DNA of 64,000 bases from Mytilus californianus (lineage: Eukaryota): NCBI RefSeq assembly GCF_021869535.1, contig NW_026262707.1:124001-188000 (forward strand), written 5' to 3'. Of the stretch, positions 1 through 60,133 are shown piece after piece. How positions within the stretch are numbered: the first letter of the stretch is position 1; each line of letters opens with the position of its first letter. A program made the translations under genes and the position numbers. Below the pieces are notes generated by a model, which was given only the letters and a program-made list of their open reading frames with translations, made no database searches and was not told the DNA's origin.

Positions 1-114
1 TGTGAACATTGTGCTTATTAGATTTCATTTTTGTATATTTTCAGTTTTTTACCCTCTCTGGAGGTCTGCAATAAAAGATAGTAACTCAGGTTTCAGCGTA
101 TCTTTGACATTACA
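1..114 (+). repeat. BEL-A 5' LTR, 3' part
   Basis: Direct repeat of 6842-6955; contains AATAAA at 70-75; ends TTACA. Confidence 0.95.
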
Positions 115-145
115 GTAAAAAACCTTGGTATCGGGAAGAATAAAC

Positions 146-3100
146 ATGGACTCAGAAAGAACTTTGCGTGAGGCGTATAGACTTACTCCAGAAGGACAAT
201 TGGTGTTTGAGGAGAGTGTAAGACAGTTTACTTCAAAACTACGAATTCAACACAGATATATAGACATGATTATGGGAGATATACATGAGCACACCCAGAT
301 GACTAAAACATTAGCTTGTACTTACAAGCAAGAACTAATGAAACATTTAAAGGAATATGAAGAAATTTCTCGCAAATATGACGACTATTTGGTTTCTCAA
401 CGGTGTGACGAAAGTTCTCGTGAGAGAGCTTCACATAGTATGATTGCTAGTTCGATACAACAGAAAGCCTCTATAGTAATAGATAATCTGGAAACAATGT
501 TGCAAGCCTTTGATATGGAAGAGCTACATAAAGTTAAAACTGAACAATTATCAGAAATCATTCAACCACCGGACGCTTTTAGAGAACCGTCAGATATTGG
601 TGTCGATAGAAAATCTAGATGTTCAAGAGGAAGTTCTTATCTTTCTCGGCAAAGAGCCAAAGTTGAAGCCGCAAAAACCAGAGCAAAATTTGCACAAGAA
701 GAAGTTGAACTTATGCGTAAACAAACAGCCATACAAGCAGACATGAAACTTTTAAGTGTGAAACGTGATATAGAGGAAGCTGAATGTGAACTCAGAGTCT
801 TGAATGAGAATTTTGATGACGATTGTGCTATTTCAGAACCAAATAAAGAAGACATCCAAAGACGTAATGCAGAATTCATACTAAAACAAACTGATCAAAA
901 TGACAATACGCCTTTAACTCAAAATTTAAATGTTGATGCACCTACGTTTATACCAGCAGTAGTAAGTCAAATCCCTACTGCCACGTTTACTCAGACAGAC
1001 GCATGTAGGGAGTTTACTCAATTCATTGTTAAAAAAAGACTTGTTATTATCAAGGCTCTGTAAATATGATGACACGCCTGGATATTTCTTAGCTTGGAAA
1101 GCTAGTTTTACAAATGTAATGCGTGAATTAAACGTTACTCCGTCTGAAGAAATAGACTTATTGGTTAAATGGTTGGGACCCGAAAGTTGCAAACAAGCAT
1201 CGAGCATTCGAGCAGCTAATGCAGGAAACCCATCTCAAGGTGTAGCCAGGATTTGGGCTAGACTTCAAGACAGATTTGGAAGTCCAGAAATTGTAGAAAG
1301 TGCTTTGCGTAAGAAACTCAATAACTTTGCCAAAATAAGTAATAAAGACAACAAACGTTTATTTGAGCTTTTTGATATAGTTTCAGAAATAGAAGCAGTT
1401 AAAGAGAATGACATGTATAGAAGTATTTTTAGTGTTTATGACTCATCGGCTGGCGTAAATATTATTATAGCAAAACTTCCATATAATATCCAAGAAAAGT
1501 GGACATCAGAGGCCACCAGATATAAGATTCAAAACCACTTGGTATATCCACCATTCACAGTATTCACCAAGTTTTTGCAAAGGATGGCAAAAATGAAAAA
1601 TGACCCCAGTTTTTTCTTCGAGGATTGTCGAGAAATCAAAGTACAGAATACTACTAATGCAACAAACAATCGTTATGGAAACACAAAAAATCAGTTATCT
1701 TGTGCACGTACTGAAACATCAGTGTTGAAACCGTTAGCAGATAAAGTAAAAAGTTCAGACTTGGTATGTCCTGTGCATGGAACAAGTCACTTATTGAATG
1801 ATTGCAGAGGTTTTCGCATGAAACCGATTTCAGAACGAAGGGAGTTCTTAAAAAAGAATGGAATTTGTTTTCGCTGTTGTGGGCCTAAGCGCCATCTAAG
1901 AAGAGACTGCAAAGAGTTCTTGAAATGTTCAGTCTGTCAGAGTCGGGAACACCCTTCTGGTTTACATACCGATATAGAGAGTATTAAAAATAACAACCCC
2001 CCAGAATCTCACGAGGGGGAGAATGAATCAGGAGAAGTTAAGACAGCATGCACACAAATATGTGGTCAAGTAACTGGCACAAGTAAGTCATGTTCAAAAC
2101 TAATGCTAGTAAAAGTGTATCCAAAAGGAAAACCCGAACAATCACGCATGATGTATTCTTTAATAGATGACCAAAGTAACAGGTCATTGGCCACTTCCAA
2201 CTTCTTTTATTTGTTTTGTGATAATGGACCTGAAACTGAATATGTTTTGTCGTCTTGTGCAGGAAAATTCACAACATCTGGACGTTTAGCTAGGGAATAC
2301 GTGGTAGAAACTTTAGATGGGTCTTGTGTGTTTGATTTACCAACTATCATCGAATGTAATGATATTCCGAACAATAGACAGGAAATAGCGTCACCTAATG
2401 TGGCTATTCAGTATCCTCATCTTGTAGACATTGCTCCTTACATTCCTGAAATCGATGAGCATGCACAGATTGATCTTTTGATAGGAAGAGATTTGATATC
2501 AGTACACCATGTACTCGATCAGCGTCTTGGCAAAGGTAACCTCCCATATGCACAGAAGCTGCCTTTAGGGTGGGCAATAATTGGTGAAGTGTGTCTCGGG
2601 AAAACTCATCCGCCTGGCATTCTAGATTGCGTAAATGTGAACAAGACGACCATTTTGAGTAATGGCCGTGCTACTTTTCTTAAACCTTGTCAAAATGAAT
2701 TACTAATAGATACGAATGTTTTCCGTACAACTGACAAAGATGAAAAAATTGGATCATCAATCGAAGACGATACATTCCTGAGGATCATGAATTCAGGTTT
2801 TGTTAAAGATTCAGATGGTTGTTGGGTTGCTCCATTGCCCTTCCGTGAGCATCGGCCAATATTAGAAAACAACAAACAATTAGCTTTAAAGAGAGCAAAA
2901 TCTTTCGATTACAGCTTGTAAATTAATTCTACAAAACGAGAACATGTCATACAATTCATGCAGAAAATCATCGAAAATGGTCATGCTGAAATAGCGCCAC
3001 CATTGGCTATATCGTCTGAATGTTGGTACTTACCTATGTTTGGGATATATCACCCCACAAAACCTGACAGTATCAGAGTTGTATTCGATGCATCCGCAGT

Positions 3101-6093
3101 GTGTAATGGTCATTCATTAAATAACATTCTGTTAAAGGGACCAGACCTCACGAACAGCCTGTTAGGGATTTTGCTTCGTTTTCGAAAAGAGGCTATAGCG
3201 GTAACTGCTGACGTCGAACAGATGTTCTATAATTTCAAAGTCAGTGAAGAGCATCGTAATTACCTTCGTTTTATTTGGCATACTGAAAATGACATTGAAA
3301 AACCATTGATTGATTACCGTATGACTGTTCACGTATTTGGTAACAGCCCCTCGCCGTCAGTGGCAACTTATAGACTTAGGAAATCTGCTGAAACTGCTGA
3401 TCAAGATGTGAAGGAGTTTGTAGATCGCAACTTTTACGTGGACGATGGTCTATTGTCGTGTCAAAATGTTGAGACAGCTGTTGATTTAGTTAAGAGAACA
3501 CAAAACGCATTGTTAAGGGGTGGTAATCTTAGGTTACATAAAATAGCCTCAAATAGCAAATATTTGTCAAGTCAGTTTCCCGTTGATGATCTGGCTAAAA
3601 ATCTCAAAGATCTGAAATTTGAAAATGACTGTTTACCTTTGCAAAGAAGCCTAGGTATGGCTTGGGATATTAACACTGACTGTTTTACCTTTCAAGTAGC
3701 ACATGACATCAAGCCATTTAGCAAGCGTGGCGTATTATCAACGATCAACTCTCTTTTTGATCCGATTGGCTTTACAGCCCGTGTCTCAGTTCGTGGTAAA
3801 CTTCTCTTACGTGATATGATGACTTCACTAGGACACACTGAATGGGATGACCCATTACCTGATACTTACCTACATCTATGGAAACAGTGGATTAATACGT
3901 TACCTGATCTTGGGCAATGATTTATTCCGCGTATGTATAGTGACATCTTCTATGCAGAAGCTTCGAACAAAGAAGTTCATATCTTTTGTGATGCTTCAAA
4001 AGAGGCAATAGGTGCGGTGGCTTATTTGAGATTAATTGACTCACACCATGTAACAGTTAGTTTTTTATTGGGAAAGGCGAAGGTTGCGCCTTCACATGGG
4101 AATACTATTCCTCGATTAGAACTGTGCGCCTCTGTGTTTGCGGCAGAATTATCTGATCTTGTCAACGAGCATTTAGGTATAGATCAAAGTGAAATGTACT
4201 TTTACTCAGACAGCAAAATAGTGTTGGGTTACTTGACAAATGAGTCAAAGAGGTTTCATGTATACGTTGGAAACCGAGTGCGACGAATTCGAGTCTCTAG
4301 TGATCCAAAAAGATGGAGACATGTTTCAACCGAAAATAATCCGGCAGATATCGCAACACGAGGAATTAACCCTGCAGAGTTATCGAATAGTATATGGATG
4401 AAGGGACCAGTATTTCTTTATAACGTGTCCCTTGGAAATTTAGATAATGGTCCACATCAGTTGGTTGATGCTGATAGTGACAAGGAGATTCGCCCAGATG
4501 TGCAAGTAGCTAAAACACAAACTGTAGATCGAAATAATCTACATAAATTAGGAACACATAGATTCTCAACATTTTCAGAATGGAGAACTTTAGTCAGAGC
4601 AATTTCCTTATTGAAACAACTTGTTAGAAATCTGGCACATCATAACGATAAACCTGAACATTTAGATGCATACAAACAACCAGATGCTTTGAAACGAGCC
4701 CAACAATTCATAATTCGTGAGGTTCAAATGGAAAATTATAGAAACGAAATAGACAATATCAGACAGGGAACATCGTTGCATAACAACAGTTCTCTCTCGC
4801 AACTATCGCCCATACTTGATGTTGATGACACCTTAAGAGTTGGTGGTCGCTTGCGAAATTACAAAGATTGTGCAGATCTTTCAAAACATCCTATTATCTT
4901 ACCAAAACACCACCATATATCATTACTTATTGTTCGACACTTCCATGAAAAAGTGGCTCATCAAGGCAGAAGCCTCACATATGGTGCTATCCGTACAGCT
5001 GGTGTTTGGATTTTAGGCAGTCGTCGTTTAGTTTCTTCAGTGCTTCATAAATGTGTGATATGTCGTAAGCTTCGTGGTTGTTTCGGTTGGCAGCAAATGG
5101 CAGATTTGCCTGAGGACAGATTAAAACCATCACCGCCATTTACATTCGTCGGTGTTGGACACTTTTGGCCCATGGCCCATAGCATATAGACGCACTCGTG
5201 TCATACCAGCTAATCAGAAAAGATGGGCACTTATGTTCACATGCCTCGTCAGCAGAGCAATTCATATAGAGGTCATAGAGGAGCTCAGCAGTGCTTCATG
5301 TATAAATGCGTTGCGTCGTTTCATTGCCTTAAGGGGTGAAGTTAAGCAGTTCCGTTCTGATAGGGGAACAAACTTTGTTGGCAGTTCAAAAGAGCTAAAT
5401 ATGATCACTGAATTGGTTGAAAAAGACTCTGTGAGAAGTTTTCTCTCAAACAACGACGTCTTGTGGCTTTTTAATCCTCCACACGCCTCCCACATGGAAG
5501 GAGTGTGGGAAAGGATGATTGGTGTTTCACGAAAGATTTTAGATTCTATGTTACTACGAGAAGGTTCAAAAACTCTTACTCATGAAGTACTTACTACCCT
5601 GTTATCGGAGGTAACAGCAATTGTAAATGCGAGACCCTTGGTTCCGGTGTCAGCTGACCCAGAATCACCATGTGTACTTTGTCCAGCAATGCTTCTCACA
5701 CATAAAATAAATCAGGACAATGTATCGTTTCCAACATTCGGAAATAAAGACATGTTGAAATCTCTATGGAAGCACACTCAGGTTCTAGCAGAAGAGTTTT
5801 GGAACCGCTGGCGTAACGAATATTTAAACCGTCTACAAACTCGACAAAAATGGACCCGTGAATACAGTAATATGAAGGAAGGCGATTTAGTACTCTTAAG
5901 AGACCGTGAATGTGCTCGCAACTATTGGCCAGTCGCAATTGTTGAAAAGACATTCTCTAGTTTTGATCAGAAAGTCAGAAAGGTTCAAATTCGTGTTGTG
6001 CGTGATGGGAAAGCAGTTAGTTATGTTAGACCAATCAACGAACTAGTAATGTTGGTAGAGCATGTGGAACTAAAACAAAGTGAAACAGATTAA
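146..6093 (+). pseudogene. BEL-A gag-pol polyprotein, disrupted
   Basis: Five ORF-track segments join into one polyprotein: Cys/His gag knuckles (CFRCCGPKRH), protease-like LIDDQS, RT YLPMFG/FYVDD, RNase H IFCDAS, integrase HHCC region and D-D-E (GVDTFGPW, SDRGTNF, GVWERMI). Lesions: +1 frameshift in an A7 run (~1031-1037), in-frame TAA 2919-2921, TGA 3918-3920, +1 frameshift ~5157. Confidence 0.93.
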
Positions 6094-6235
6094 TGATTAT
6101 AATTTTAACTCGTTGAACCTTCGGATAGTCAGAACATTTTATTACAGTTATTACATTTTGCATTGATAATTTGTTCATGTTATTTTCAAATTTGTTTATG
6201 AATTGGTGATTTTAGATTTGAAATCAGAGGGGGAG

Positions 6236-6955
6236 TGTTATGTCACACTCCGGAAATTACGGATCTGTCCGTCATTATGTCGAATTTTATTTTTGATGTC
6301 TGCCACACGGCAAAGATAAACAAACTTTTCTTTGGTATTCAACCCTCCACAGGGTGAGTTTTTGTTATACTGTAGTTTATAACCTTCATTTGTATGCCCG
6401 ATATACGTATTTAAAGTCTAAGGTCAGTCCTTTTGAATTTAATTGTGATTTCAAACGATTCTCAGGAGTCATATCTCATGTCACACTTATTTTGTATTTT
6501 ACATGTTAAATTAAGCTTTCCGATGTTTATATGATGGTTATTTTTATTCCTGCTTTTATTATACACCAGTCCTAGTCAATTTAAGCTTCTTAATTCTCGA
6601 TTTTTGATATTACTCCGTCAGTTTGTCAAAATATTTTTTGTATGGAACGCCAATAGAGCCATATATTTCGGCGTACGTTTTTTCTTAAAACAGTATGTGT
6701 ATAGAACGCTTTTCGTGTTATAATTTTGTTATCTAAGATGTAATTCTATGGCACTTTTTGATCATTTTTTGGTTGTTTCATAAGATAGACATATTTTTCA
6801 ATGTATGGAGAACATTGTTGATATTAATTGTACCATTATTTTGTGAACATTGTGCTTATTAGATTTCATTTTTGTATATTTTCAGTTTTTTACCCTCTCT
6901 GGAGGTCTGCAATAAAAGATAGTAACTCAGGTTTTAGCGTATCTTTGATATTACA
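6236..6955 (+). repeat. BEL-A 3' LTR (720 bp)
   Basis: TGT...ACA termini, follows the PPT, AATAAA at 6911-6916; followed by GATAG (candidate TSD, 5' copy outside window). Confidence 0.94.
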
Positions 6956-7170: not shown

Positions 7171-7594
7171 GATTGATTGATTGTTGGTTGCCTAACGTCC
7201 AGTGGCAAATATTTCATGCATATTCAGGACGAGAACAAATTAACAATAAATACAATAGGTAGGTTCTGTAATAGGGGCGTCCGGGATTAAGGTCGGAGAA
7301 ATTTAGAATACCACGGGAAATGAGGGTATATTGGATAGGGACAGAAATTTAGCCTTGCAACAGGTCACCTACGGACCCCTCAAAGAGTTGTTGCAAGGGT
7401 TCTTAACGTGCAAAGAGTGTGGCACTCTCTTTACACGAGGCATCGGATTTAACGTCCCCATTCTGACCGGACGTGGCTGCAAATTTGTACATCCCGCACA
7501 GCCAAACGGACGCCCCACTTTAGCACGGGTTTTACTGCCAGTCGGAGGAAGACCAATGGTGACCATACTTCTATTCCCCAGTCACCCTCGGGGG
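7171..7594 (-). mobile_element. SINE-like retroposon, copy 1
   Basis: ~420-bp dispersed repeat; head CCCCGAGGGTGACTGGGG, tail (CAAT)n; no clear TSD in this copy. Confidence 0.88.
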
Positions 7595-8154
7595 TCTATT
7601 ATTTAGATTCACAGAATTTATATTTACAAGAATATAATATCAGACTACAGTAAGGAAGGTCTGCTGCAATAAAAAAAAAATCATTTTTTATTTGTTTTTT
7701 CTTCTTCTGCAAACTGGCCAGGTGTGTCTGCTCCCTCAAGTTAAACCAACAAATTAAAAACCTGCGGCCGTATGAGTAATAAAAATTGCGTTTATTTGTC
7801 TTGTTAATTTGCCTGCTTTGTAAATGATCGAATTACAATGATTATGATTAATTAATTGTTTTTGCAGAGAATGTGAACAGTAATCCTGCAAGAACTAATC
7901 TTACCTACGCAGAAAAAAGGAAGAGGGTAATGGGACTTGTTGAGATACAAGCTCATTGAAACCAGGTTGGAGGAACAGTCCCCAGCAACTCATTCTTGTT
8001 GCTTTTGTCAATCAACTGTTGATGATGTCATAGTTTGTCAGGATTGTGGTCCCTCTGCATTGTGATGCTTGCTGTAAGAGGATACATCAGAACATCCTGT
8101 TCCATAAGCCACACCAGTGGAAGGTAACATATTGCCACAATATATATAAAAAAG

Positions 8155-8565
8155 ATGTGGTATGATTGCCAATGAGACAACTCTCCACAAGCATACAAGA
8201 GACCAAATGACACAGAAAGTATTAACTATAGGTCACCGTACGGCCTTCAACAATGAGCAAAGCCCATACCACATAGTCAGCTATTAAAAGCCCTGAAATG
8301 ACAATGTAAAACAATTCAAACGAGAAAACTAACAGCCTTATTTATGTAAAAAAATGAACGAAAAACATATATGTAACACATAAACAAACGATAACCACTG
8401 AATTACAGGCTCTTGACTTGGGACAGGCACATACATGTAGAATGTGGCGGGGTTAAACATGTTAGCAGGATCCCAACCCTCCCCCTAACCTGGGACAGTG
8501 GTGTAACAGTACAACGTAAGAACGAACTATAAAAATCAGTTGAAAAAGGCTTAACTCATCAGGTG
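8155..8565 (+). repeat. High-copy dispersed repeat (AAGATGTGGTATGATTGCCAATGAGACAACTCTCC family)
   Basis: Related segments recur at ~18720-18775(-), 25785-25890, 35680-35820(-), 40005-40285, 45915-46130 and 53495-53560(-). Class unresolved; family recalled from mussel genomes. Confidence 0.75.
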
Positions 8566-11203
8566 GATACAATTACAAATACAAGTGGACGTTGCCGGGT
8601 ACTTGTACATCCCAACAACAAAAAGACACTTAGTACAGATCTGAGAGTACTCGCAGTTACTGACAGCTAGTTCAAAGCCACTAACAACTATAACAAAATT
8701 CATGCATCTAAGACTAATGTCATTTGTTCATGTGTTTAGATGTAGTTTTAAAACTTTTCTGAAAACCAGGATAGAAAAGCAACATTGCAGCTTTTAGAAA
8801 TGTTTAAAAACTGATATACTTTGCAATGCTTTGTGCGGTTATCAAATGAATTTCATAAAATCGTTGATAGTTTTCAAAATTTAGAAATTATTACTGACTA
8901 TTTTCAATAAGAATGTTCAAATGCTTAAAATGTACACACACACAAAAACCATGAAATTAATTGAAAAATTGTAAAGACGAGATTGTTCTTAACAGCCTAC
9001 AAGATACAATGTATATTGATCCAAAGAATTTTTTCAATCTCTAACTTTGTCCTATCAATATATTTCTTTCAGGTTTATATATGATCATATTAACATCATA
9101 CATTAATACTTTAATTATATACATACTTTACCTCTATTACAGCAAACCATGTATGTACCTATTCACATGACAAATGAACTTGCCAGGAAAGACCACATTT
9201 GTGAATCATCATACTCTACTTCCATATATGCTGTTGATGTAAAGGGTAAATATTTTTTATGCTGACCCCCCAAATAAATGTTCCAAACAAACGGTTTTTG
9301 TATGATTACTTTAGTATCCTCTTTTTCTTGGTTGAAATTAACTTTATACAGATGGAAAATATTTGGAAGGGGAAGAAACTGAATTTACTACTCTTTAGAG
9401 CCTCTAGTTTTTCTTTCTTTAATATGTTATTCTCATATTGCAGGTTTACAACATACATATAAAAAACCAGCTATGTAGATGTGAAGATCCTGCAGTCACC
9501 TTTATGCGTTACAGCTTATGGCCAGCTTCACCTACAAGCCCTAAAATTGGCTTTGATCTCAGATTCATGGAGCTATTGTCTGTTCTGCAACTTGAGAGCT
9601 GTTTATCTGCAAAATATGTTTGTGATGCTTTAGATGCTATGCACTCGGACTACATTAAATGAATCTCCAACGTTGCAAGTAAATTTAAACAGTTTTCCAA
9701 TGTCATAAAGTGTTCTCTCATTAGGCATTTGTTAGAAATACATCAGTATAGACAAAAGTATGTTAAAAGATTTTTAAAATATTTGTTGTCACAATGTGCT
9801 GTCTAGATTTAGACAAAAATAAGAAAAAAGATTAGAATTGTGGTTTTGTGCTAGAATGTAAAGATATTTGGTGCTTATCTTGCAAATTTAGTTTGTAAAA
9901 AAATGCTGGAATACTCGAGGTCTATTTTGTGCGTATATTAAGATTTGTTAATATCAGATATGGTCAAAGTTGAAGAAAAAAACAAATTTCACCAAGCTTC
10001 AGCTTACTTCAGATCAAGGACAACTGCTTTTAGAATCAGCTCAGACAAAGAGAAAAAACGCCTGTCTAGTTAAATTAAAGGAACTTGCAACTGACAGGCA
10101 ATATTTATCTAGCTTGAAGAAATATGCAGGTATGAAAATGTATAACAAGTATTATATACTTAAGAGCTGTTCCATTTAAACTTACATGGTACCAAGGGCA
10201 GACAATTTAAAACTTAATTAATCACCCATAGAGTCAAATTTATAATTTCAATTCAATTTTCAATGGATTTCATAACAATCTTTAAAATGGTTGTTATGTT
10301 TTATGGAACAGCCCTAATTTTTATAAATGGGGATAAACTGATTTTGATTCAAGCTTTATAAGTCAACCTATACAATGTGATAAATTTTAAGGTTTACCTC
10401 TCAGCAACTTTTTGTAAATAGCCATGTAGGAATTTTTTGTTGCATTTTTCTCGATAACTACAAATAAGTCCTTCGAAATTCAGAATCACGTGTCATATAA
10501 CCATGCTTTTCAGTGTGAATTGTTTTCATATACATTTCTTAACAACTTTCTATTTACATTAAACCAATAAATATAATTAATTTGTTATATTAATTTTGCA
10601 GAGGGTCAAGATATTGGAATCCGAATAAGCAAACAGTTCTCCAGCAACTTTATAAAGATAAAAAAAGAAGTGGACAAACTGAATGCTATTTCCCGCACAA
10701 ATTTGGATTCCAAACAGTTTCTGTCTTTAGAATCAGAAATATATGATCAGTTGGAAACGAGAAAGATCTCTGAAAACCAACAAAAGGCTGTTCAGTCCAA
10801 ATGTTTGATTGACCATGCAGAAGGAGAAAGTACTAATATTGACATTGAAATAAAAAAGTATTTACTTTATTTAAGTAAACAGAGTGAAGAAATAATTGAC
10901 ACAATCAACTGTCTTTTACCTTTAGAAGGAAACAGGTTCCATTTAGGCAAAATTAATTACCTCTTAGTGGAACATTTTAATATTGAAACTGTTTTTCATT
11001 CGTGTTTCACATTATTTGAACACACTGTTACAGATGTTTCTATTGTACCAAGAATAGTTCATGATAAATTGAATACAGAATTGTCAAGATCCTTAAATTT
11101 ACCAGCCGAAGAAGAAATAACAACAATTTTTCAGGAAATTGAGCAGTTTGAAAATAATGAATTGAACCGTATTTATATGGAAAAGGAGAGTGACGAGGGA
11201 GGA

Positions 11204-11621
11204 TTGATTATTGGTTGCTTAACGTCCAGTGGCAAATATTTCATGCATATTCAGGACAAGAACAAGTTAACAATAAATACAATAGGTAGGTTCTGTAATA
11301 GAGGCGTCTGGGATTGAGGTCGGAGAAATTTAGACTGCCACGGGAAATGAGGGTATATTGGATAGGGACAGAAATATAGCCTTGCAACAGGTCACCTGCG
11401 GACCCCTCAAAGAGTTGTTGCAAGGGTTCTTAACGTGCAAAGAGCGTGGCACTCTCTTTACACGAGGCATCGGATTTAACGTCCCCATTCTGACCGGACG
11501 TGGCTGCAAATTTGTACATCCCGCACAGCCAAACGGACGCCCCACTTTGACGAGGGTTTTACCGCCGGTCGGAGGAAGACCAATGGTGACCATACTTCTA
11601 TTCCCCAGTCACCCTTGGGGA
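11204..11621 (-). mobile_element. SINE-like retroposon, copy 2
   Basis: Full length; 12-bp TSD GACGAGGGAGGA (11192-11203 / 11622-11633). Confidence 0.93.
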
Positions 11622-13621
11622 GACGAGGGAGGAGATGACGATGATATTAAAATTGATAACAATGAAATTTTGTGTTGATGACACAATTATTCGATCGATT
11701 AAAACAGGAAAAGCTTAAACAATGTCAGAAAATAGCACCCGGTTATAAAACTCAATTTTTACGAGGGTCAAGCCATTGAAATCCGAATAAGCAACCAGTT
11801 CTCAAGCAACTTTATAAAGATAAAAAAAAGAAGTGGACATACTGAATGCTATTTCCCACACAAATTTGGATTCTAAACAATTTTGGTCTCTAGAATCAGA
11901 AATATATGATCAGTTGGAATCGACAAAAACTGTATGTTTATATGTACCACATATGAAGGTATATGACATGCAGATAGCTTGGTATTTCCTCAATAAGATT
12001 GTATTATGATATGGGGAATTTTGTCACTCCCTGATTTAAATTTGATAAATAAATACACAGAACAAAAAGAAATGCAATTGGAAAACACACTTCCCTTTCA
12101 TCAGAGACATATATATATATATATGTATATATCTGCTTTCATCAATATACATTGACATTGGACTCCTTGTAACACATTAATTAAAACAGCAAGAATTAAT
12201 ACAAGTTAATGAAACGATCTGCATACATGGTTAGTATTATACTATAGAGTAATGTCATTGTTTGTTTCTCGATTTTTGGTAAGAAAAAAAAAACAGTATT
12301 AATTCCAATTTTTATTTTAATTTTTTTTTTTTCGACCTCCTACCCTCCCTTTTTTTTTAGAAGAATCCTGTAAAGCAACTTATAAAAAAGTGGCCCTATT
12401 TTCACCAAGTCAGGAATATGACAGTTGGTGTCCATTCGTTTGATGTGTTTTATCATTTGATTAGGGGCTTTTCGTTTTGAATTAGAGTTCAGTATTTTTG
12501 TGAATTTACTTTTTTCTCTTTGACTCTTCATACTAGCAACGGCAATATTATTTACCTGTATGACCTCACCAGGCCCCCATTGCTTTTGCACACACACGTA
12601 GTTTTATCGTCCTCTTTCTTTTCTTTTTTCAATTTCTTTATGTACATATCGATCGAAATTGAAGTCAAGCTAAATTCTAGTAAGAGTCTAGAATGATTGA
12701 CTATGAGGACAAGAGAAGTCATACAGGTCAATTATTTTGTCGTTGCCGTTACTTGTATAGCGATATCACTGCATGAAAACTTATCTTTTGTTTTCACCAA
12801 AAGATTGCTTTTTAATCTTTTCTAGACCTTTTAAAAAATACAAAAGATTATATTTTCACATTAATATGCATCAAATGGCCCACTTTTGTTTGCACAAAAG
12901 GTAAACAACATGTGTGACCTTTTGTATAATTATGAAAGATGTGGAGTGCAAATGTGATCTTTTGACAGCCAAAAGGTAACAAAAGAAAACCCTTTGGTGA
13001 TCAAAAGATGACAAAAATATGAACTTGTTCACATTTTGTCACAAAAATGTTTACAAAATTTAGCTGTCCATGGAAACGAAAGGTGACCAAAATATGAACT
13101 TTTTATACATTCCTGTCACACAAATGGTAATAAAATTTAGCTTTCCATGGTAAAAAGGATGACCAAAATATGAACTTTCTGTACACATTTGTTTGGCAGA
13201 ATGTGACAGTAAACAAAACCTTATAAACCCTAATGGTACTAAGGATGATGTGGCAAATGGTCTCATAAACAAATGACAAACATAATTAAAAAATGGTCTG
13301 AATCATGTTTTCACATTGGCTCTTATTGAAAGACTACCATTTCAAACCCGATTAATGGATTCAATGATATTACTGTTAGACAAAAAAGTAAACTATTTTA
13401 CTGTAATTGTGTTATATTATGCACAAACACCCAACATGGCTCATCACTTGTGAATCAGGAACTGCTAACCTTTCCTTAAAGCACTTTAGTTTTCAGTTTT
13501 TCATTATTTTTTTTTCAATTTTGTTAATAAAAAAACAGTACTTTTACAATAAAAGTAGGAACGTTTATCATCTACAATTTAATGATGGGACAGTGGAATT
13601 AGCTTCTGAATTAAAGGGGGA

Positions 13622-27361: not shown

Positions 27362-27869
27362 TAATACATAAATTATCAAAGGTCTACTAGCAGTTTACTG
27401 CCTTGCCAGATCCAGACCCCAATTAAACCGATTGCAAGATTATGTCTTTACCATATGAATATTGAGTACAATCCCATCCGTTATGGGTTTAGTATTATTT
27501 CATCATAAAATATGAGACCATAACCTGTAGCATGCAAACAACTGGTTTTAGAATAAAAAAGCTTATTTCCGATGCAAAGACCCTATAAGTGAATCAATAT
27601 TAAAGCCAAAATATGCAATCTTTAATGACCTGACAACAGTATCGTAACTAATCCCTTCTTAATAAGTCTGTTTAAAGGTTTTGTTAGCTTTTGAGGTGAA
27701 TGCCGACAATGTTGTGCTTTGTAAAGAATATTACCATAAAAAATTGGATGCGAAATGCCTGAACGTATAAGATGTCTGCATGTTGAATTATATTTACGAA
27801 TGATGTCCTTGTACCGATGATAACATTTAGTAAATGTTTTGACTAGTTTGTGATATCGAAAACCCTGGT

Positions 27870-28562
27870 TGTAATGCCAAGAATATCATTAGAGTTATCC
27901 CTCTTTATACGCAACCTGCATTTTTGATAATTGTGGTTAATCCGACTTGTTTTTGTTTTACACATTGTTTTTACATTTCCTGCAGCATGGCTTGATAAAT
28001 TTTTGAACATAATTACGAAGAACATTATCATTCTCCTTGTCCCTTGGTGAATTACGATGTAAGTAATAATGCCATTATGTACTATATATTCTAGTTAAAG
28101 CTATTATTATGTTATTTGCGGTATAAGTCATGAGAAAGCATATATCCAAACAGCTTACATTCTACGAACGATGGCATTTGTGTAAATAATCATGTGTGAA
28201 CTTTGTAATATTTTATTTGTATGCGAAAACAGTATTATTTGGTATATTTCTAAGTCATATGTAATTTTTATGAAGACAGCAATTTTTGTACAACTCTAGT
28301 CAAGTCAGTTCAGTACATTCTCCCCCTTTTTTGTCAATTGTGTTTTTCATTGATTTGAGTGTTTTCAATCATAGATTTTTTGTATTTTATTACTACAGTT
28401 GGTAGTTAACAATGTTAGTTATTAGTTTTTATTTTTTATATTGTAGCTTTTCACCAAATGTATGTGGCTTCATGATCTGTCAGCTCCTGACGCATTGAAT
28501 GTTTAATTGAATAAAATGATCTACATATATATGGTTTAACTCTCTGCGCCCAAGGCAGAACA
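27870..28562 (+). repeat. BEL-B 5' LTR
   Basis: TGTAATGCC...GCAGAACA; no difference from the 3' LTR seen on manual comparison. Confidence 0.97.
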
Positions 28563-28580
28563 GTGAAAAGATCCATCAGC

Positions 28581-31500
28581 ATGGCGACAAGTGGTGATGG
28601 AGAGGAGGAAGGAAGGACAAAACATTTAACACCGAAAGCATATGAACAATACCTAGGTGAGGTTGATAAATATTCACAAGCATTAGCTACACTAAGCAGG
28701 GAAAATGACAGACTTATCTCTATTTTGCTATCCAATGAAGCAAGGCATGAGGAAATAGCTTCAGCAGCTGCCCAACTGGAAGAAACAACAAATAAATACA
28801 TTAACTTATCTGATTGTTATATAGATTATTTGAAACGTAAAAATACACTCGACAGTCAACGCGAACTCATAGCCCATCAGTTAATACGCAGTGTCAACAT
28901 GCATAAAACTGAAACTGCAATGAATTATTCTTTATCAAAGTTAAAACCTCATGAACCTACTCAAGCTTTCATACAAACAGGTGAACAGGTGAAAAAAGAC
29001 ACTACTACTCCAGTAACAGATGTTCAAATGAAACAAGAATTGAAAAAAGAACCTAATGTCAGCAACTCAGTTAGGAGCCATAGATCAAGCACATCTAGAC
29101 GATCAGGGCGTAGCAATGCTAGCTCTACAATGATGCGACAGAAAGCTAATTTAGAGGCAGCCAGAAAGAGGTTAGAGTATGTCGACCAAGAATCAACCCT
29201 TGTGCAACAGAAAGCACAACTAGAAGCGAACACTACTTTAGAAAAAGCGAAACTTGAGAAAATGACAAAAGAATTAGAAGCAAAACGTGACGTAGCAGTT
29301 GCAGAGGCTGAACTGCATGCTATGGAGGAAGTATTTGATGAATCAGACAGGGAAACAGAGGTTTCATCCCCATCGTTAACTGAACAACGAACGGCTAAGT
29401 ATATTATTGAGCAAAGTAAACATGTTAACAGGCAATACGAGGTTCACAACAGTGCAGCTGTTAACAACATAGACACACAAACTTCCTTACACAATGAGGA
29501 AAACATGAATGAAGAAACGCCGGTTCACTACAGTGCGCCAGCTGTGAACAACATTGACACACAAACTTTCTTACGCAATGACGAACACATGAATGAAGAA
29601 CTGCCTATACAGAGAACTGGAAAAATAGCAAGTCAAGTGTCAAGTGCAAATCAAATTGTGCAACAAATACATAAAGAGACAATTGAACAAATTCCTGATA
29701 CAAACAACAACAGAACATTAAGTCTAAACTATGGCCAGGAACTTTCAAAATTTTTGATGAAAAAGGACTTAATAATATCTAGACTTTTGAAATATGATGA
29801 CCGTCCAGAGAATTATTTATCATGGAAAGACACTTTTAAATGTGTAATGTCAGAAATCGACGCGAGTCCTGCTGAAGAAATTGACCTAATGATCAAATGG
29901 CTAGGACCTGACTCATCACGTCAAATTAACAGCATCAAAATTTCAAATTCAGGAAATCCAACTGTGGCATTATCACGTGCTTGGAACAGATTAGTTCTAC
30001 GTTATGGTTGCCCAGAAATGATCGAAAGTGCCCTGCAGAAAAAATTACAGGCTTTTCCAAAGATAACATATAAAGATAAGAAAAAATTGTTTGAACTTTC
30101 AGATGTATTATCAGAAATACGTTCAGTTAAAGAAAAACAAGAATATGCAGCACTACTAGCATATTTCGACACATCCGTCGGTGTGAATCCTACAATTGTC
30201 AAACTTCCTATTAACCTGCAAACTAAATGGCGAGATAGAGCAGTAACATACAAACGAATACATTCAGTTCTATATCCACCATTCACATACTTTTGTGACT
30301 TCATCAATGACATGGCTTCAACTATAAATGATCCTAGATTTATATTTGAAAGCGATACATATGTTGCCCCCAAGAACGAAGACAAACCATTTAAGACACG
30401 ACAATTTGCTGTTAAAAAGACAAATGTTTCACAAGACAAACATGAACCACACGCCAATGAAAACTCTAAAATGCGTTGCGCCATACATAATAGCGATCAC
30501 TTACTGGATGAGTGCCGTGCTTTTAGACACATGAGTATTGTAGATAGGAGAGCTCTACTGAAGAAAAATGGTTTGTGTTTTAAATGTTGTGTTGGGAGAC
30601 ACATTTTTCGCAATTGTGACAAGAATGTTTTATGTTCTGAATGCAAAAGTACTGATCACACAGCGGCTATGCACATTTACGCAAGTCAGGATAGAGTCCA
30701 GAAACCCAACAACAGTCAAGGCGGGGAGAGTTCTGTTAACTCGAAATGTACTCAAATTTGTGGAAATACATTTGCAGGAAAATCATGTGCAAAAATTGTG
30801 TTGGTTAATGTAAGACATACAACAATGGATAAACAGCCAATCCGTACTTATGCAATCATAGACGAACAAAGCAACTGTTCATTAGCAAGGAAAGAGTTAT
30901 TAGACTATTTTGAGGTGAATACTGAACCAGAACAATATTCACTTGCTAGTTGTAGTGGTCAGTTTACTATGACCGGTAGGAGAACAAAGGGTTTCATAAT
31001 TGAATCGCTTGAAGACAATTACTGCATAGATCTCCCAACTTTAATTGAGTGTGACTCAATACCAAATAATAGACAAGAAATTCCGACAAATGAAATTGCT
31101 CAAGCTCATCCTCATTTGCAATCTATTGCACACATGATACCGCACCTTGATAAGGATGCTGAAATTTTACTCCTTATAGGGAGAGATGCAGTGGAAGCTC
31201 ATCACATACTGGAACAAAGGCTAGGAAGTCATAATCAACCATTTGCTCAGAAGCTCAAGATGGGATGGGTTATTGTAGGCGAGACTTGTCTGGATGGAGC
31301 GCATTACCCTAGCACTGTCAATGCTATGAAAACTTTTGTACAACAAGATGGGAGGCCATCAATATTTGAACCATGTGACAATAGTATTCATATTTCAGAA
31401 AAATTATCAACGTCTTTGTTTAAACTTGAGCCTGATGACAACCGCCAAGGTATGTCAATTGAAGACAAAAAGTTTATGCGCTTAATGTCAGATGAAATAC

Positions 31501-32778
31501 AACAAGATGAAAATCAAAACTGGACTGCTCCACTTCCCTTCAAGAAATCACGTCTGTTACTACCAAATAATCGTCTACAAGCTCTAAATCGAGCAAGAGC
31601 CTTTGATATAAGTTTGCGTAAAGATCCTGTTAAAAAACAACATGTCTTAGACTTCATGAAAACTCTTTTTGACAATAATCATGCTGAACGAGCACAAAAT
31701 ACAGAGACTCCGAAAGAAATGTGGTATCTTCCTATGTTTGGGGTGTATCATCCGAAAAAGAAGGATCGCATTAGAGTTGTTTTTGACTCATCCGCTAAAT
31801 TTCAAGGAACTTCTCTAAACGACGTATTGATGACAGGACCAAACCTTGTTAACAGCTTGCTTGGAGTTTTATTGAGGTTTCGGAAGGATAAAATTGCAAT
31901 TACAGCAGACATTCGACAGATGTTCTATAGTTTCAATGTAACGCCAGAGCATAGAGATTTTCTTAGATTCATATGGCATGAAGGCAATGATATGGAGAAA
32001 GATTTAGTGGACTATAGAATGGCTGTTCATGTGTTTGGAAACAGCCCTTCTCCAGCTGTCGCAACCTTTGGCTTACGTAAAACCGCTGAAATGGCAGAGT
32101 CAAAATATGGATCAGATGTAGTAACCTATGTAAATAATAACTTTTATGTGGATGATGCACTGTCTTCTCATTCAAACAGTGACAAGGCAGTAGACTTGTT
32201 AAAAAGAACTCAATCTGCATTGCAAGAATTCGGCAATTTACGCCTGCATAAAATATCTTCAAATTCGAATGAAGTTCTGGCAGCATTCGAAAAAGACGAT
32301 TTATCTGAAGATTTGAAAAATCTTGACTTTAGTGACGATTGTCTTCCTGTACAGCGTAGTCTTGGGGTCAGTTGGAATCTTCAGTCGGATAACTTTACCT
32401 TTCAAGTATCATTAGACAATAAACCATTTACTAGACGTGGTGTACTTTCAGTTATCAATGGACTGTACGATCCATTAGGTTTTGCGGCACCAGTAACCAT
32501 TGCTGGAAAACTTATTCTTCGTGAAACTATGAAAGAATCCACTGAATGGGACGAACCATTACCTCCGCAATTTCAGTCGAAATGGCAATCTTGGAAAGAT
32601 TCTCTTCAACTTCTCCAACAAGTGGAGATACCTAGAAACTACAGTTCAGACTGGACACTTAACAAGGACCTCTGTATATTTTCTGATTCATCTGAAAAAG
32701 CTGTTGCGGCAGTTGCCTACATACGAACTACTGATAAGAATGGAACAACACATCTTGGATTTGTACTAGGAAAAGCTA
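28581..32778 (+). CDS. BEL-B gag-protease-RT-RNaseH(N), 5' part of interrupted polyprotein
   Basis: Open frame from ATG 28581 with CFKCCVGRH/CSEC knuckles, AIIDEQS, FYVDD, IFSDSS; ends at ...LGKA at the insertion site. Confidence 0.93.
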
Positions 32779-33762
32779 CGCGGGACTGTTAAGGCATTTT
32801 TGGACATTTTTTCCCGGATTTTTTACCAAGCGGAGATAACTCCATGTTCCTTATTATTATTCATGACGTCATCAATGCACACTGAGCGTCGCAAGGAAAG
32901 ATTTCGTTATATGGTAAATACAGACGATGCATTGTTGTCAAAAGTATTTCGATATGGTGTATAATTATTTAAGGTACTATGATTTGCCATACTAATTACA
33001 TTTATAAGTAAAGTTTATTTATCTTAGCAGTTTTTCTATCGCGGACTTGGCCCCGCCTATTCAGACTAAACGACCAATCAAAATCTCCTCGAGGTCTTTT
33101 GGATGCTTGTATTCTGAATGTTGAGGGCACCTGTTTGTTCAACGAGTAAAGTGACTTTTCCTAGAAAAACCTGAAATAAACTGTAGAATTATGTTTCTTT
33201 GGGCAAGAAAAGTGATTGTTAGGACATTTATGATCGCATGCATCAAGTAAGTCAAATAATAATGGAGAAAATACCTCTATTAGCGGATATATTGGTGTCA
33301 GAATGTCAATTTTTGACCAGAACACGTGCTTCTATCCTGTTGGTCGTGTCGCCTGCCTTAAATCCGTTGAATTAGCGATGCCTGTCAAGAGGATATTTAA
33401 TTTATCATTTCTTTAGTTTGATGATTTGCTATCTATTGCGAAAACCTGTCATATATATTCATAATAAAATTGCGCCTGAAAAAATTGCAGTTGAAATGAC
33501 CATTAATTGGCATTTCAAATACGAAGTATCTCCAGACATATGAAAATTTAAATACAGAATTCTTCAACTTTTGTGGCAGGCTATAAACTGAATAAGTACA
33601 GCTGTTCGGTGCATCTCTCTGTTTGCACAGGAATCTGAAATGTTATTAAAATCAAGGTGACACACATGCAGATGCACAGTGATTGGCTACTAAAATTTAC
33701 TGTCTATAATTTCATAATTCCTGTGTATTAACTTTTTAATTATTTTTTCTAAGTTATACTAA

Positions 33763-39900: not shown

Positions 39901-42900
39901 GAAAATTACAGCCTTTGGACTAATAAAAATATACACAGACTGATACACTCTTTTCGATGTGTCTTCAGATCTTGAGCTTGTTTTTAATATGTAAATATAT
40001 ATAGGAAGATGTGGTGTGAGTGCCAATTAGACAACTCTCCATCCAAATAACAATTTATAAAAGTAAACCATTATAGGTCAATGTACGGCCTTCAACACGG
40101 AGCCTTGGCTCACACCGAACAACAAGCTATAAAGGGCCCCAAAATTACTAGTGTAAAACCATTCAAACGTGAAAACCAACGGTCTAATCTTTATAAAAAA
40201 CGAGAAACAAGTATAAATTACATAAACAAACAACAACTACTGTACTTCAGATTCCTGACTTAGGACAGGTGCAAACATTTGCAGCGGGAAATCCAGTTAT
40301 GATGAGTTACGGATCAGCTTTAAGTTTCATGCTGCTCTGCTTATTTTTGCTGAAATTACAGACTCTAACTGAACTTGAAATAATCTGAAATAAACAGTTG
40401 AATGCTGGACCGTGCATGTTTCTGTCCCCACTTGTAATTGATATTGCAGGTTTTCACTTTATTTGAAAAGGGACCGTTTATGTCGTTCTGACACATCTTG
40501 ATTATACATGTACCCCCAAGTCCTATAAGTAATAGTTTCAATACTAGGATTCACTTTTACCTTTTTTGTCTTCAAAAAGATTCCTTTTAACTTGCAATCT
40601 TCTCTTCCTAATGGTTGTTCTACATGTACTTGCTGTACAACTTGACCTGTCATCATTGTCACACACAGCAGATTTCTTATCTGTAATAAGATTCACATTT
40701 TGATTATTGTATAGTGAAAAATTCAAATATTTGTCAACCCAATGCATGCAATAAGCCTTCCAAATAGATAACATCGTAGATCATGTACAATGTAGATAGG
40801 GAGCTACCATGGCCATTTAAACTGACAACTTTCATCATTTTCAGTTACATGTACATGTAGTTGTGAAGTTTGTTCACCAATGGATTCATAAATATAAAGG
40901 TATGAAATGAAATAAGAAATAAACTAACAAAGCCATAGCAAGAAAAAAAATAATCTACACTTTGCCGAGCAATTTATTTTATGGTAAAAATGGTATTTCA
41001 TAAATGCCAGTTTTCATGTAACTGATTGAATTTAAGTTTTTATAATAATTATCATACCTTTAATATATGAGTTGTATAGAGTTTTAACTTTGTCATCTTC
41101 CAAATGCTTATATCCTGAAAGATAAAACCTTGAACTTAAAAACTTCATCCATCAATCTTCAACTAATTGTAAAATAAATAGTTACAAATGTTTATAAATA
41201 TATCTATACATAGATAAGTTAGACTTGTTAATATATTTATAGGTATTGTATGTGTAATTGGAATACTAAAAATAATATGCCAAGGCCAGATAAAAATATA
41301 TGTGTGGTTACAGTTAAATACTTTTAAAAAATAGGTTCGGTAGGTGGGCAATTTCATTTTTTTTTTTCTAAATTTTTAAAATGGATTGTCAAAATCAATA
41401 AAAAAAATCGTGTGTTTACCAAAATTGATTCCGGTATTATACACGCCTCTTCAGGAAGTTCATCATTTTTCAAGTGTTACTGTGAAAAATAAATAGCGTT
41501 GCGTTTCTAGTTAATTTTGTTGCATTCTGTTATGAATTGTTGCATTTCAGAATGGATATTTTTTTATGAAATTCAGATGACAGGAATCTATGAATTTAAT
41601 TATTTAAAATTCACAATCCTCAAAATTTGATCAATTACTTTTTTTTCAGAAATGACAAAAAAAAAGTTCTAGGGTTGGGGGGTTTAAACCATGGTCAGTC
41701 TGGTAACTGGAACAATAAATATATTTTTTATTTAGCCCAATCGTGTAAAAAATAAATTTCTATACATGCCATTTCTATGCATTTTTCTTAACAATCAACA
41801 GAAATCTCATTTTAAAACAAAAGACTAACTTGTTGAAAGTTGTTTATCCATTACTTTTCTTGCAGCAAGTTTCTTCTCGCCAGTGTGTGCAGTATGGTTT
41901 GATAACTGGTGGTCTGTAAATAAGGATAAAGGAAAATAAAATTAGAATACAGTTTATTTACTTTTATATATTACTTTTCAGGCACAAAGACTACTGTTGA
42001 AAAGTTGTTGGTAATATGCAAAAGTAAAGATAAATGTTGAGGACCTCCAGACATTCTTCAAGGACCACAAGGGGGAAATGAGAATTCTTTGACAACAGGC
42101 TTTCATTCCAAAAAAAAAACTGGTATTTGTAAAGTTCGACTGGTTTACCAAAAAAAATGATAAGTATTAAAAATGGTGTAGAATTATTTTGTTAAGTTTT
42201 CAGTTTATGAGATGATGTGAATTGCAGCAATGGAAAATCACTCTTTCTTTTGTAGAATTTAACAAAGGTTCTTAATTTGAAGGTTTTTCATGTACCCACT
42301 TCATGAAATCACACATTTTTATGTCATACCTTAGATCAAATTGTTTTCAATGGAAAAAAGAAAATGGACATAATTATAAAAAACACAATAAGAAAAAGGG
42401 TGATCAATCATTCCAATATAATGTATAATACTGTTAAACAATTTTTGTAATAGATTTAAACCTTTACCATGGTCTCCAGAAAGGGAAACAATCTGTTTAG
42501 CTGGAATGGTCATTGGATCATCATCTGAAAGAAGAAAAATAAAAATATGGCTGAATTATTTGTCTTTTAAGGTTTTGCATTTTAGAAATATTCAAATTGG
42601 AGAAATCATGAACATAAATCACATTCACTTTGGACACTTTAAGACATTGAAATATAAGACAAATTCGTCAGTTTTGTGAATTGATAGTTTTGACCCTTAT
42701 AGTTTACTAGGTAGCTCATTTGGAAGAGCACCTCAACCCAGTTTGAGGAGGTTCCAGGTTCAAATCCTGGCCTAGTACTTATGTTGGCTTCAGTTTAGTG
42801 TAGTTTTTTTACGCCCGATTACGGGACGTTAATGGTATACTTACTGTTGACCGTCCATTGTCAACATGATGGACATTATTTCAAAAACACTTTAACTAAT

Positions 42901-55762: not shown

Positions 55763-57389
55763 TGTATTTGATTTTTTTTTGCAAGTTATATCATTGCATA
55801 TTCTTGTTTGTATTATTGTTCATAATATATATGTCAGATTTTGAGATGCAAAATAAAATTCAAGATGAAAAATGTTTGTGTTATGACTCAGATGACTTCC
55901 ATGTTTGGTTTGCTGCTGCTGCTATTCTCTGCTGAATACAGAAAATTTTCTGAAGATTTTTTATGATATCACTTTTGAGAAAAAAGATAGACATGCAACC
56001 AGAAAATTACAACAATGATTAAAAAACAAAATAAAGCAGAAAAAAAAATGGAAAGAAATATATGAGACTAGAGTCTGGATGCTCCACATAAAAAGTTTGA
56101 TTATCAATTGATTAAAACTACTTATTCTCAGGGGAGGATGCATAAATGTGTTTTTTTTGTATTTTTTTTTCAAATACACATAAAATATGTGATGGGTTAA
56201 TGTTAAGACCTGGTCATACTATAGACACCAGTACCCCCCCCCCCCCCCCCCCCCCCCCATTTTCTATCCGGCATGTTTTAAATGTTTCTGTGTATGTTGA
56301 TGAAGTAAACATTTCATTTTAGGAGGTTAAAATAAAATATTAGAGCACAACTTAGTTCTTTATTTGAAAAAAAAGGCTAAAAAATTGGGTCGCTTGTGAT
56401 GGAACTTTGATCCCTGATATGGTCATCTGGAAGGCTTTATAACTCACTATCTGCAACTGAAAAAAAAACATAATATTTACTGAAATGTTATTCTGCAGCT
56501 GTAATATATATCAGCAACATCATGCATTTAAAGGTAAGTTTTTTTTTCACACAAAAAATCAATTTAAGAAAAAAAAATCCTCCTAAACAAACGACATTTA
56601 TACAAAAGCTGGAGTTTTATTTCAATAATTTCTGTATGAAATAGCTTTAGAAGTTATTGAAAAACGTATTACTTAATATATGTACAGAGATTGACGCTTA
56701 TTTTATTAAAATATAGGTATATTGTCCTCTCGTCGATTTATTTTCATGTTGAAAAGACCGCCAGAATAATTTACAGAGTTGTGTCCCTTTGACGTCACTT
56801 GAACGTTTGAAAGTAATGACGTACATTAAAAAGTTTGACATTGGTCAACTTCAGAGCGAAAGTTCTAGAATTAATCATCTGTATTTTTCTAATATGATTA
56901 GCGTTTTCAAATCGGAACATTCTCAGGATTATGAAAACTGATATACAATTGGCGTGGCAATATTGGTGAATTAAATAGATAGCGTTGTTTACTTAAAAAG
57001 GTTGATCGTGACGATTTTTCGCTTGTTTATTTTAATTTTTTATTATCTCTTACAAGTATTCACCAGTGTATAGCATTTTTCTTATTCCACGTACTTTTAC
57101 CGTTAAAATGAGACCGAAAGGAAATATTTACGATAAGTGAACGCACTAGAACTTTACGGAAAACTATAATTTTATATATAAATACTACAGTAGTCAGGTG
57201 ATCGTCACGTGACTTTTTTCCCAGGGTAAATCATAACAAAATGAAACATAATTTATTGTTTTATCATAGAATACCACTGATTAGACGTTTCCCGTTCATA
57301 CAGCAATTATGTACCGCTTTGGTGGTCTTATTGTTTATTATGCCCAAATAGCTAAAAACAGTACTGAATGGCCTTAACCATCCCGCGTA

Positions 57390-59326: not shown

Positions 59327-59440
59327 CTTGTGAACTATATAGAATGAGAACATTTTTGATTGTGTACTTGGACAAACTTTTTTGATTTTTGAAGTATTGT
59401 TAAATTTTTTATTAGTGATATATTCATATCAGACGGGGAG

Positions 59441-60133
59441 TGTAATGCCAAGAATATCATTAGAGTTATCCCTCTTTATACGCAACCTGCATTTTTGATA
59501 ATTGTGGTTAATCCGACTTGTTTTTGTTTTACACATTGTTTTTACATTTCCTGCAGCATGGCTTGATAAATTTTTGAACATAATTACGAAGAACATTATC
59601 ATTCTCCTTGTCCCTTGGTGAATTACGATGTAAGTAATAATGCCATTATGTACTATATATTCTAGTTAAAGCTATTATTATGTTATTTGCGGTATAAGTC
59701 ATGAGAAAGCATATATCCAAACAGCTTACATTCTACGAACGATGGCATTTGTGTAAATAATCATGTGTGAACTTTGTAATATTTTATTTGTATGCGAAAA
59801 CAGTATTATTTGGTATATTTCTAAGTCATATGTAATTTTTATGAAGACAGCAATTTTTGTACAACTCTAGTCAAGTCAGTTCAGTACATTCTCCCCCTTT
59901 TTTGTCAATTGTGTTTTTCATTGATTTGAGTGTTTTCAATCATAGATTTTTTGTATTTTATTACTACAGTTGGTAGTTAACAATGTTAGTTATTAGTTTT
60001 TATTTTTTATATTGTAGCTTTTCACCAAATGTATGTGGCTTCATGATCTGTCAGCTCCTGACGCATTGAATGTTTAATTGAATAAAATGATCTACATATA
60101 TATGGTTTAACTCTCTGCGCCCAAGGCAGAACA
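59441..60133 (+). repeat. BEL-B 3' LTR
   Basis: Same length (693 bp) and apparently same sequence as 27870-28562. Confidence 0.97.

Follow-up and report, generated by a model that had tools for sequence, protein, structure and literature searches.

A branch of BEL/Pao retrotransposons with a covarying LTR duplex and probable self-primed reverse transcription

Self-priming of reverse transcription is known for the retrotransposons Tf1, Tf2 and Tj1 and for the Tf1/sushi group of Ty3/gypsy elements, and the fold-back duplex of Tf1 is 11 bp long. In this mode of replication a 5' segment of the element's mRNA acts as the primer, which has been shown for Tf1 and implicated for elements from fungi to vertebrates (PMC4600332). 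Tf1 also needs a U5-IR stem-loop, according to the title of Lin and Levin 1998 (cited in PMC5443660). The ICTV profile of the Belpaoviridae gives an 18-nt primer-binding site to which the 3' end of a host tRNA is complementary (PMC8742986), and surveys of BEL/Pao elements do not discuss the binding site (PMC3118150, PMC6238403, PMC554778). Other elements are described in which such a site is missing: GalEa Copia elements have a "conserved hairpin site" in place of a primer-binding site (PMC5445492), and bivalve TRIMs have no recognisable primer-binding site (PMC6934838). We found no report of self-priming in BEL/Pao elements in the open-access literature, and an earlier mention in older subscription papers is possible.

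We analysed 64,000 nucleotides of DNA from the mussel Mytilus californianus (the window, meaning the whole of this stretch), in which two elements, BEL-A and BEL-B, are found. The landmarks of BEL-B are as follows.

27865-27869 (+ strand) and 60134-60138: left and right copies of the target-site duplication CTGGT, 5 bp
27870-60133, + strand: whole BEL-B element, a BEL/Pao LTR retrotransposon
27870-28562, + strand: 5' LTR, 693 bp, TGT...ACA
28424-28446, + strand: T-rich tract ending in TAG (28444-28446), directly before the primer site
28447-28454, + strand: predicted self-primer CTTTTCAC, with C as the next base; the C at the 3' end of the primer is the partner of the first internal base
28510-28515, + strand: AATAAA poly(A) signal, 56 nt downstream of the primer site and before the LTR end
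28543-28559, + strand: U5 hairpin (TCTGC...GCAGA), 3 nt short of the LTR end, from RNAfold of the last 34 nt
28563-28570, + strand: putative primer-binding site GTGAAAAG, 8/8 Watson-Crick with 28447-28454
28581-32792, + strand: gag-pol open frame, part 1, 1403 aa from the ATG, stopping within Peptidase_A17 (model positions 1-115)
32793-57367, no strand: foreign DNA splitting pol, about 24.5 kb, borders approximate
57368-59326, + strand: pol, part 2, with Peptidase_A17 positions 117-162, integrase region and DUF5641
59432-59440, + strand: polypurine tract GACGGGGAG, directly 5' of the 3' LTR
59441-60133, + strand: 3' LTR, with a copy of the primer site at 60018-60025

BEL-B has the features by which BEL/Pao elements (Belpaoviridae) are recognised, namely Peptidase_A17 together with DUF5641, TG...CA LTRs, a 5-bp target-site duplication and a polypurine tract. 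The Pao reverse transcriptase (RT)/RNase H region (Peptidase_A17, PF05380) is matched in both halves of the element (E = 5.8e-29 and 1.9e-10), and DUF5641 (PF18701) lies C-terminally, after the integrase (E = 1.6e-24). Pol is broken between Peptidase_A17 model positions 115 and 117 despite LTRs that are 100% identical (27870-28562 against 59441-60133). A second copy of BEL-B on contig C165 is 99-100% identical and has about 7.65 kb between its LTRs. ARAGORN made a single odd tRNA-like call in the window, at 42705-42778 within the DNA interrupting BEL-B and with a four-base anticodon (ccag), and an Rfam scan of 27800-28700 matched no family.

For transcript evidence, three raw RNA-seq runs were mapped on 27770-29770. 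Few reads were obtained from BEL-B, too sparse to place a transcript start. Reads on the left flank (27770-27869) reach a depth of about 30, are mostly 95-99% alike and pass from 27869 straight into the sequence beyond the 3' LTR (60139 onward). These transcripts therefore stem not from the BEL-B insertion but from an empty site or from other, paralogous copies of the repeat in the flank.

The original prediction was that the first ten bases after the BEL-B LTR, GTGAAAAGAT (28563-28572), pair at nine of ten positions with AGCTTTTCAC (28445-28454), after a T-rich tract ending in AG and upstream of AATAAA. The reverse complement does match at 9/10, and the coordinates listed above bear out both landmarks. 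Anchored at the first internal base, the perfect Watson-Crick run is 8 bp, GTGAAAAG / CTTTTCAC. The T-rich/TAG tract would be a core promoter or initiator, and hence the border between U3 and R. The distance from the LTR to the gag ATG is 18 nt and holds no TGG-type tRNA site. TGGCGAC at 28582 was considered as such a site and rejected; it lies in the region of the gag ATG, 19 nt from the LTR, and is not common to the families. Contig C94 carries an element that is 73% identical to BEL-B (L027:1501-1760), in which GTGAAATG follows the LTR and CTTTACAC stands at the primer site; both sides have changed and pair at only 6/8 positions. This element is possibly a decayed copy and does not count in favour of the model.

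BEL-A takes up positions 1-6955 of the window, and its landmarks are as follows.

1-114, + strand: last 114 nt of the 5' LTR, cut by the window start, with CAG at 42-44 and AATAAA at 70-75
44-52, + strand: predicted primer GTTTTTTAC, after a T-rich tract and CAG and before AATAAA
115-123, + strand: putative primer-binding site GTAAAAAAC, 9/9 with 44-52
6359-6955, + strand: 3' LTR, start approximate, ending ...ACA at 6955, with a copy of the primer site at 6885-6893

The 31 nt between the BEL-A LTR and the gag ATG hold no tRNA-type site. A candidate of that type 11 nt past the LTR, TGGTATCGGG, was not common to the families and was dropped. The two elements had been said to fold back with different bases, and this is what we find, with pairing of 9/9 in BEL-A and 8/8 in BEL-B at corresponding LTR sites. 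The accompanying statement that the LTRs are otherwise not alignable is nearly true, failing for a shared T-rich/YAG context, a trailing AC-C and a small hairpin before the LTR end. The chance of such a match had been put at roughly 1% per LTR, which was a good estimate: in dinucleotide-preserving shuffles of the BEL-B LTR an anchored run of at least 8 arises in 1.7% of cases for the whole LTR, 1.4% for the last 300 nt and 0.5% for the last 200 nt, and the 9/9 pairing of BEL-A has a shuffled-LTR p of 0.0135. A match of at least 9/10 anywhere in the BEL-B LTR is found in 5.8% of shuffles.

A Pfam search gave at least 150 matches to Peptidase_A17 in the Mytilus genome, from which we sampled twenty 10-kb loci; 10 short loci were added from a separate genome search, and within this sample four families of the self-complementary clade come from this genome. 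The sampled BEL/Pao loci are of two kinds, those with TGG tRNA-type sites and those with a GTAAA start and the polypurine tract of BEL-B. In the tRNA-type families (L001, L003/4, L008/9, L011 and L018/19) the site starts with TGG 1-5 nt after the LTR, as in TGGTAGCAGAG, TGGTGCCGGAACCCGGGA and TGGTGCCGTGACTC, the first of which we take to be an initiator-Met-like tRNA site. In L015/L017 the internal start GTAAAAAA pairs with TTTTTTAC, which follows ...ttttcag and lies 88 nt from the LTR end. Mytilus family 3 (four copies, L012, L013, L014 and L016) starts with GTAAATTG, which pairs with CAGTTTAC after a T-rich tract with one G.U pair; its anchored run is 5 bp if only Watson-Crick pairs are counted, which is not significant, and 8 bp with the G.U. 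The LTR is separated from the gag ATG by 18-40 nt in three of the four Mytilus families of the clade.

A protein search with the BEL-B RT found relatives that are 50-62% identical in bivalves, gastropods, shrimp, a nemertean, fishes and frogs. Nine whole elements with their flanks were taken from other species, with LTRs set by self-comparison, giving together with BEL-B, BEL-A and two further Mytilus families a set of 13 families from 11 species. In all nine the LTR ends in A, the internal region starts GT(A/G)AA and a CAG(A/G)CGGGGAG tract is present, a polypurine motif that is kept throughout the clade. In all nine the first internal bases are also complementary to an LTR site that follows a pyrimidine tract and YAG and ends in AC, then C or A.

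Mya: first internal bases GTAAATTG, LTR site CAATTTAC
Saccostrea: first internal bases GTAAAAGAA, LTR site TTCTTTTAC
Haliotis: first internal bases GTAAAAGG, LTR site CCTTTTAC
Patella: first internal bases GTAAAAAGACT, LTR site AGTCTTTTTAC
Palaemon: first internal bases GTGAAAAA, LTR site TTTTTCAC
Pungitius: first internal bases GTGAAAC, LTR site GTTTCAC
Hyperolius: first internal bases GTGAAAC, LTR site GTTTCAC
Magallana: first internal bases GTAAAAAA, LTR site TTTTTTAC
Acipenser (sturgeon): first internal bases GTGAAA, LTR site TTTCAC, 6 bp

A tRNA-type site, sought by its TGG start, was found after the LTR in none of the 13 families. The RT proteins of a Mytilus family 3 copy (L012:4475-5854) and of the Palaemon carinicauda element (L035:5905-7278) are 82% identical (378/460), a likeness far exceeding that between mussel families, which could be to do with horizontal transfer or contamination. 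At the Palaemon locus (L035:1-12245) copies of the element follow one another head to tail every 7367 bp, 1-4879 recurring at 7368-12245 (99.7%), and adjacent units share one LTR.

Within this set the helix starts at the first internal base in 13/13 families and is 6-11 bp long. Positions 1-8 of the pair table contain 99 Watson-Crick pairs in 104 cells, plus one G.U, and positions 9-11 are mostly unpaired. The pair types found are AT/GC at position 3, AT/TA/TG at position 6, AT/TA/GC/CG at position 7 and AT/GC at position 8. Sliding the registers by 1-3 columns leaves no more than 56 pairs, while 20,000 column shuffles average 77.6 and never exceed 90. When the primer-binding sites were swapped among families, with each swapped site placed wherever it fitted best within the final 300 nt of the LTR, the run sum was 72.6 +/- 4.9 with a maximum of 96 in 100,000 trials, against 102 observed (p <= 1e-5). 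Moving the anchor 1-3 nt into the LTR reduces the run to 3-7, mostly 3-4, and each step downstream costs the run one pair, so the start of the helix coincides with the junction of the LTR and the internal region. In the main clade the site is invariant at positions 1, 2, 4 and 5.

Three tests had been named for the original prediction, a shuffled-LTR control, a family-wide analysis of covariation and a mapping onto an RT phylogeny, and all three come out in its favour. In the first, per-family p values of 0.0005-0.14 combine by Fisher's method to 1.6e-9; six tRNA-primed control families gave values from 0.03 to 1.0, one of them having a 7-nt run with p = 0.03. In the second, the fit of 99/104 Watson-Crick cells is destroyed by swaps, column shuffles and slid registers alike. 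In the third, the 13 self-complementary families form one clade of the RT tree with 100/100 support and a long stem, apart from the tRNA-primed BEL families of the same genome, which fall outside it. Among sister pairs in this tree, Mytilus family 3 and Palaemon differ at 4 positions and BEL-B and Mya at 3, and at all seven differences (one from a G.U pair) both sides have changed with the pairing kept. The claim that it is the pairing and not the sequence that is conserved is thus upheld by compensatory changes at a homologous LTR site in 13 families. A self-priming clade as proposed is supported by this family-wide test, from which we infer the function.

The LTRs of the clade have further features in common. 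In 11/13 families AATAAA or ATTAAA follows the primer segment at a distance of 9-76 nt, with 39-108 nt left to the end of the LTR, and a poly(A) signal in this place fits a primer segment that stands at the beginning of R. A U5 hairpin of 5-7 bp lies 1-4 nt before the LTR end in about nine of the 13 families, and further upstream in the three vertebrate elements. The hairpin stems differ between families (window 28543-28559, L012, L015, L031-L037), and GGCAGAA(C/T)A recurs in several of them. The helices are short and A/U-rich at 6-11 bp, and in folds of the RNA from the YAG to just beyond the site the minimum free energy structure includes the helix in 7/13 families, while in the others forming it costs at most 2.1 kcal/mol. 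Splice-like signals are also present in the main clade, with (Y)n-YAG before the primer site (28444-28446) and GT(A/G)A at the internal start (28563-28566); we regard this resemblance as probably coincidental with an initiator-type promoter.

A sister lineage (L006/L020 in Mytilus), with an RT that is 38% identical, is also without a tRNA site. Here the complement begins 2-4 nt after the LTR and not directly at the junction (L006:1175-1790, L040, L041, L042), which suggests a different processing of the ends.

L006: ATTGACT against AGTCAAT
Saccostrea: ATTGAC against GTCAAT
Haliotis: ATTAAC against GTTAAT, a coupled change
Clownfish element: GTAAGAAAACT against AGTTTTCTTAC, 11 bp, P = 0.002

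The abalone member of the sister clade (L041) had no convincing or unambiguous site. To these we added metagenome contigs scanned with an RT profile, which gave 80 loci, 12 of them with a definable junction; about half of the contigs with a repeat were collapsed at the LTR, leaving the junction undefinable. None of the 12 has a TGG site after the LTR, and in 8/12 the best complement comes directly after a T-rich tract and YAG. The letters of the pairing vary among the metagenome elements (GTCAAAC, GTGAGAA, GTAACGAAAA, GTTTGA, AGTTTTC, GTTCGAA).

Taking 29 elements together, the best complement starts at the pyrimidine-tract+AG motif in 20, a motif that occupies 1.9% of positions (binomial P = 2e-28). 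The motif was defined after the first 13 families and was not used to pick the complement; among the elements examined after its definition the complement is at the motif in 10/16. This positional rule does not hold in 9/29, of which L012, L034 and L039 still pair at the homologous site. Four metagenome elements (L053, L081, L111 and L083) have ambiguous LTR borders and no convincing or unambiguous site.

These comparisons show that the bases next to the LTR and a site at a fixed place within it form a conserved, covarying duplex, that a tRNA-type site is lacking, and that the trait is monophyletic. BEL-B and BEL-A belong to a large monophyletic branch of BEL/Pao elements without a tRNA primer-binding site, which by analogy with Tf1 most likely primes minus-strand synthesis with its own RNA. 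Transcription would start at or beside the YAG that ends the T-rich tract of the LTR, and the first 6-11 nt of the transcript would fold back onto the bases directly after the LTR. Cleavage of the RNA would follow behind the ...AC that ends the primer segment, the RNase H of the element being the presumed enzyme by analogy with Tf1, and the new 3' end would be extended through U5 and R. In the standard model plus-strand strong-stop synthesis copies the primer while it is still attached to the minus-strand DNA. Here plus-strand strong-stop DNA would copy the attached RNA primer, so that the binding site may be re-templated from the primer segment in each cycle. Re-templating would account for the perfect complementarity that is kept between close relatives in spite of their very different sites, and the far end of the helix would then mark the 5' end of the RNA.

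A wider reading is that self-priming is the ancestral and general mode of a major, metazoan-wide branch of the Belpaoviridae, with the site re-templated from the capped 5' end in every cycle. tRNA priming would then be only one of two modes in the family, and the idea that early LTR elements primed themselves would gain weight. That branch has RTs 38-62% identical to that of BEL-B and is found in molluscs, crustaceans, fishes, amphibians and unidentified marine hosts. We regard this extension as tentative, with the odds leaning somewhat against it.

The helix could instead be a structural element of the 5' leader, an R-U5 closing stem with a role in packaging, dimerisation or translational control, with another RNA as the primer. 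In predicted folds it does close a structured R-U5 domain. However, a structural stem would have no reason to start exactly at the LTR/internal junction in 13/13 families. As the border of the LTR is set by the start of the minus strand, this exact anchoring is the strongest argument for priming over mere structure. A host primer would also be expected to have a site, and neither a TGG-type nor any other shared site is present; the 8-mers at the primer-binding site differ even among four families of one host genome. We therefore consider a purely structural stem unlikely.

Mimicry of splice signals is a still less probable reading, to which we give little weight. The LTR tract and CAG would here be a 3' splice site and GT(A/G)A a 5' splice site, the complementarity being a by-product, and the main clade does have (Y)n-YAG before the site and GTAAA or GTGAA directly after the LTR. 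Splicing, however, needs no complementarity between an exon and the start of an intron and leaves the compensatory changes unexplained, and in the sister groups the sites start with ATTGAC, AGTTTTC or ACCACGC and not with GT, yet pair after YAG. The RNA reads contain no splice joints, at a depth far too low to tell. That an A-rich leader fits a T-rich LTR merely by chance might be suspected from single elements (p of only 0.0005-0.14, and one tRNA-primed control with a 7-nt run at p = 0.03), but it is already refuted by the family-wide controls (combined p = 1.6e-9, site-swap p <= 1e-5, positional P = 2e-28, several pair types per position) and has almost no probability left.

If the self-priming reading is correct, a mechanism so far peculiar to Tf1 and related Ty3/gypsy elements would extend to a whole branch of a second superfamily. 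The textbook and ICTV statement that the Belpaoviridae are tRNA-primed would need revising. There would also be practical consequences. Annotation pipelines that demand a tRNA site would miss or misjudge such elements, while a simple rule, by which the bases that follow the T-rich/YAG motif are read as their reverse complement, would predict both binding site and transcript start. Silencing based on tRNA fragments would not apply to self-primed BEL/Pao elements, and in the coupled evolution of primer and site the re-templating of cis elements by reverse transcription could be studied in a natural setting.

Compared with the canonical Belpaoviridae (Tas, Pao, BEL and roo), the clade has the same polyprotein architecture, TG...CA LTRs, 5-bp target-site duplication and polypurine tract, but the 18-nt tRNA-type site is absent from the self-complementary clade. 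GalEa and the bivalve TRIMs are likewise LTR elements of aquatic animals or fungi without a tRNA site, for which alternative priming is suspected; their authors found no complementarity to an LTR site, whereas that of the BEL/Pao clade is explicit, anchored and covarying. The closest likeness is to the Tf1/sushi elements. In both there is no tRNA site, and the binding site beside the 5' LTR is complementary to part of the LTR of the same element, a part presumed to be where the mRNA begins. As in Tf1, the 3' end of the predicted primer abuts the junction, with a 2-4 nt spacer in the sister clade, and a hairpin in U5 close to the binding site is reminiscent of the U5-IR. As self-priming is well known in Ty3/gypsy, the BEL/Pao case would add a variant and not a new kind of priming. 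By Peptidase_A17, DUF5641 and the RT tree the clade is BEL/Pao and not Ty3/gypsy (chromoviruses), its duplex is shorter at 6-11 bp against 11, and its LTR has a conserved pyrimidine-tract+YAG context.
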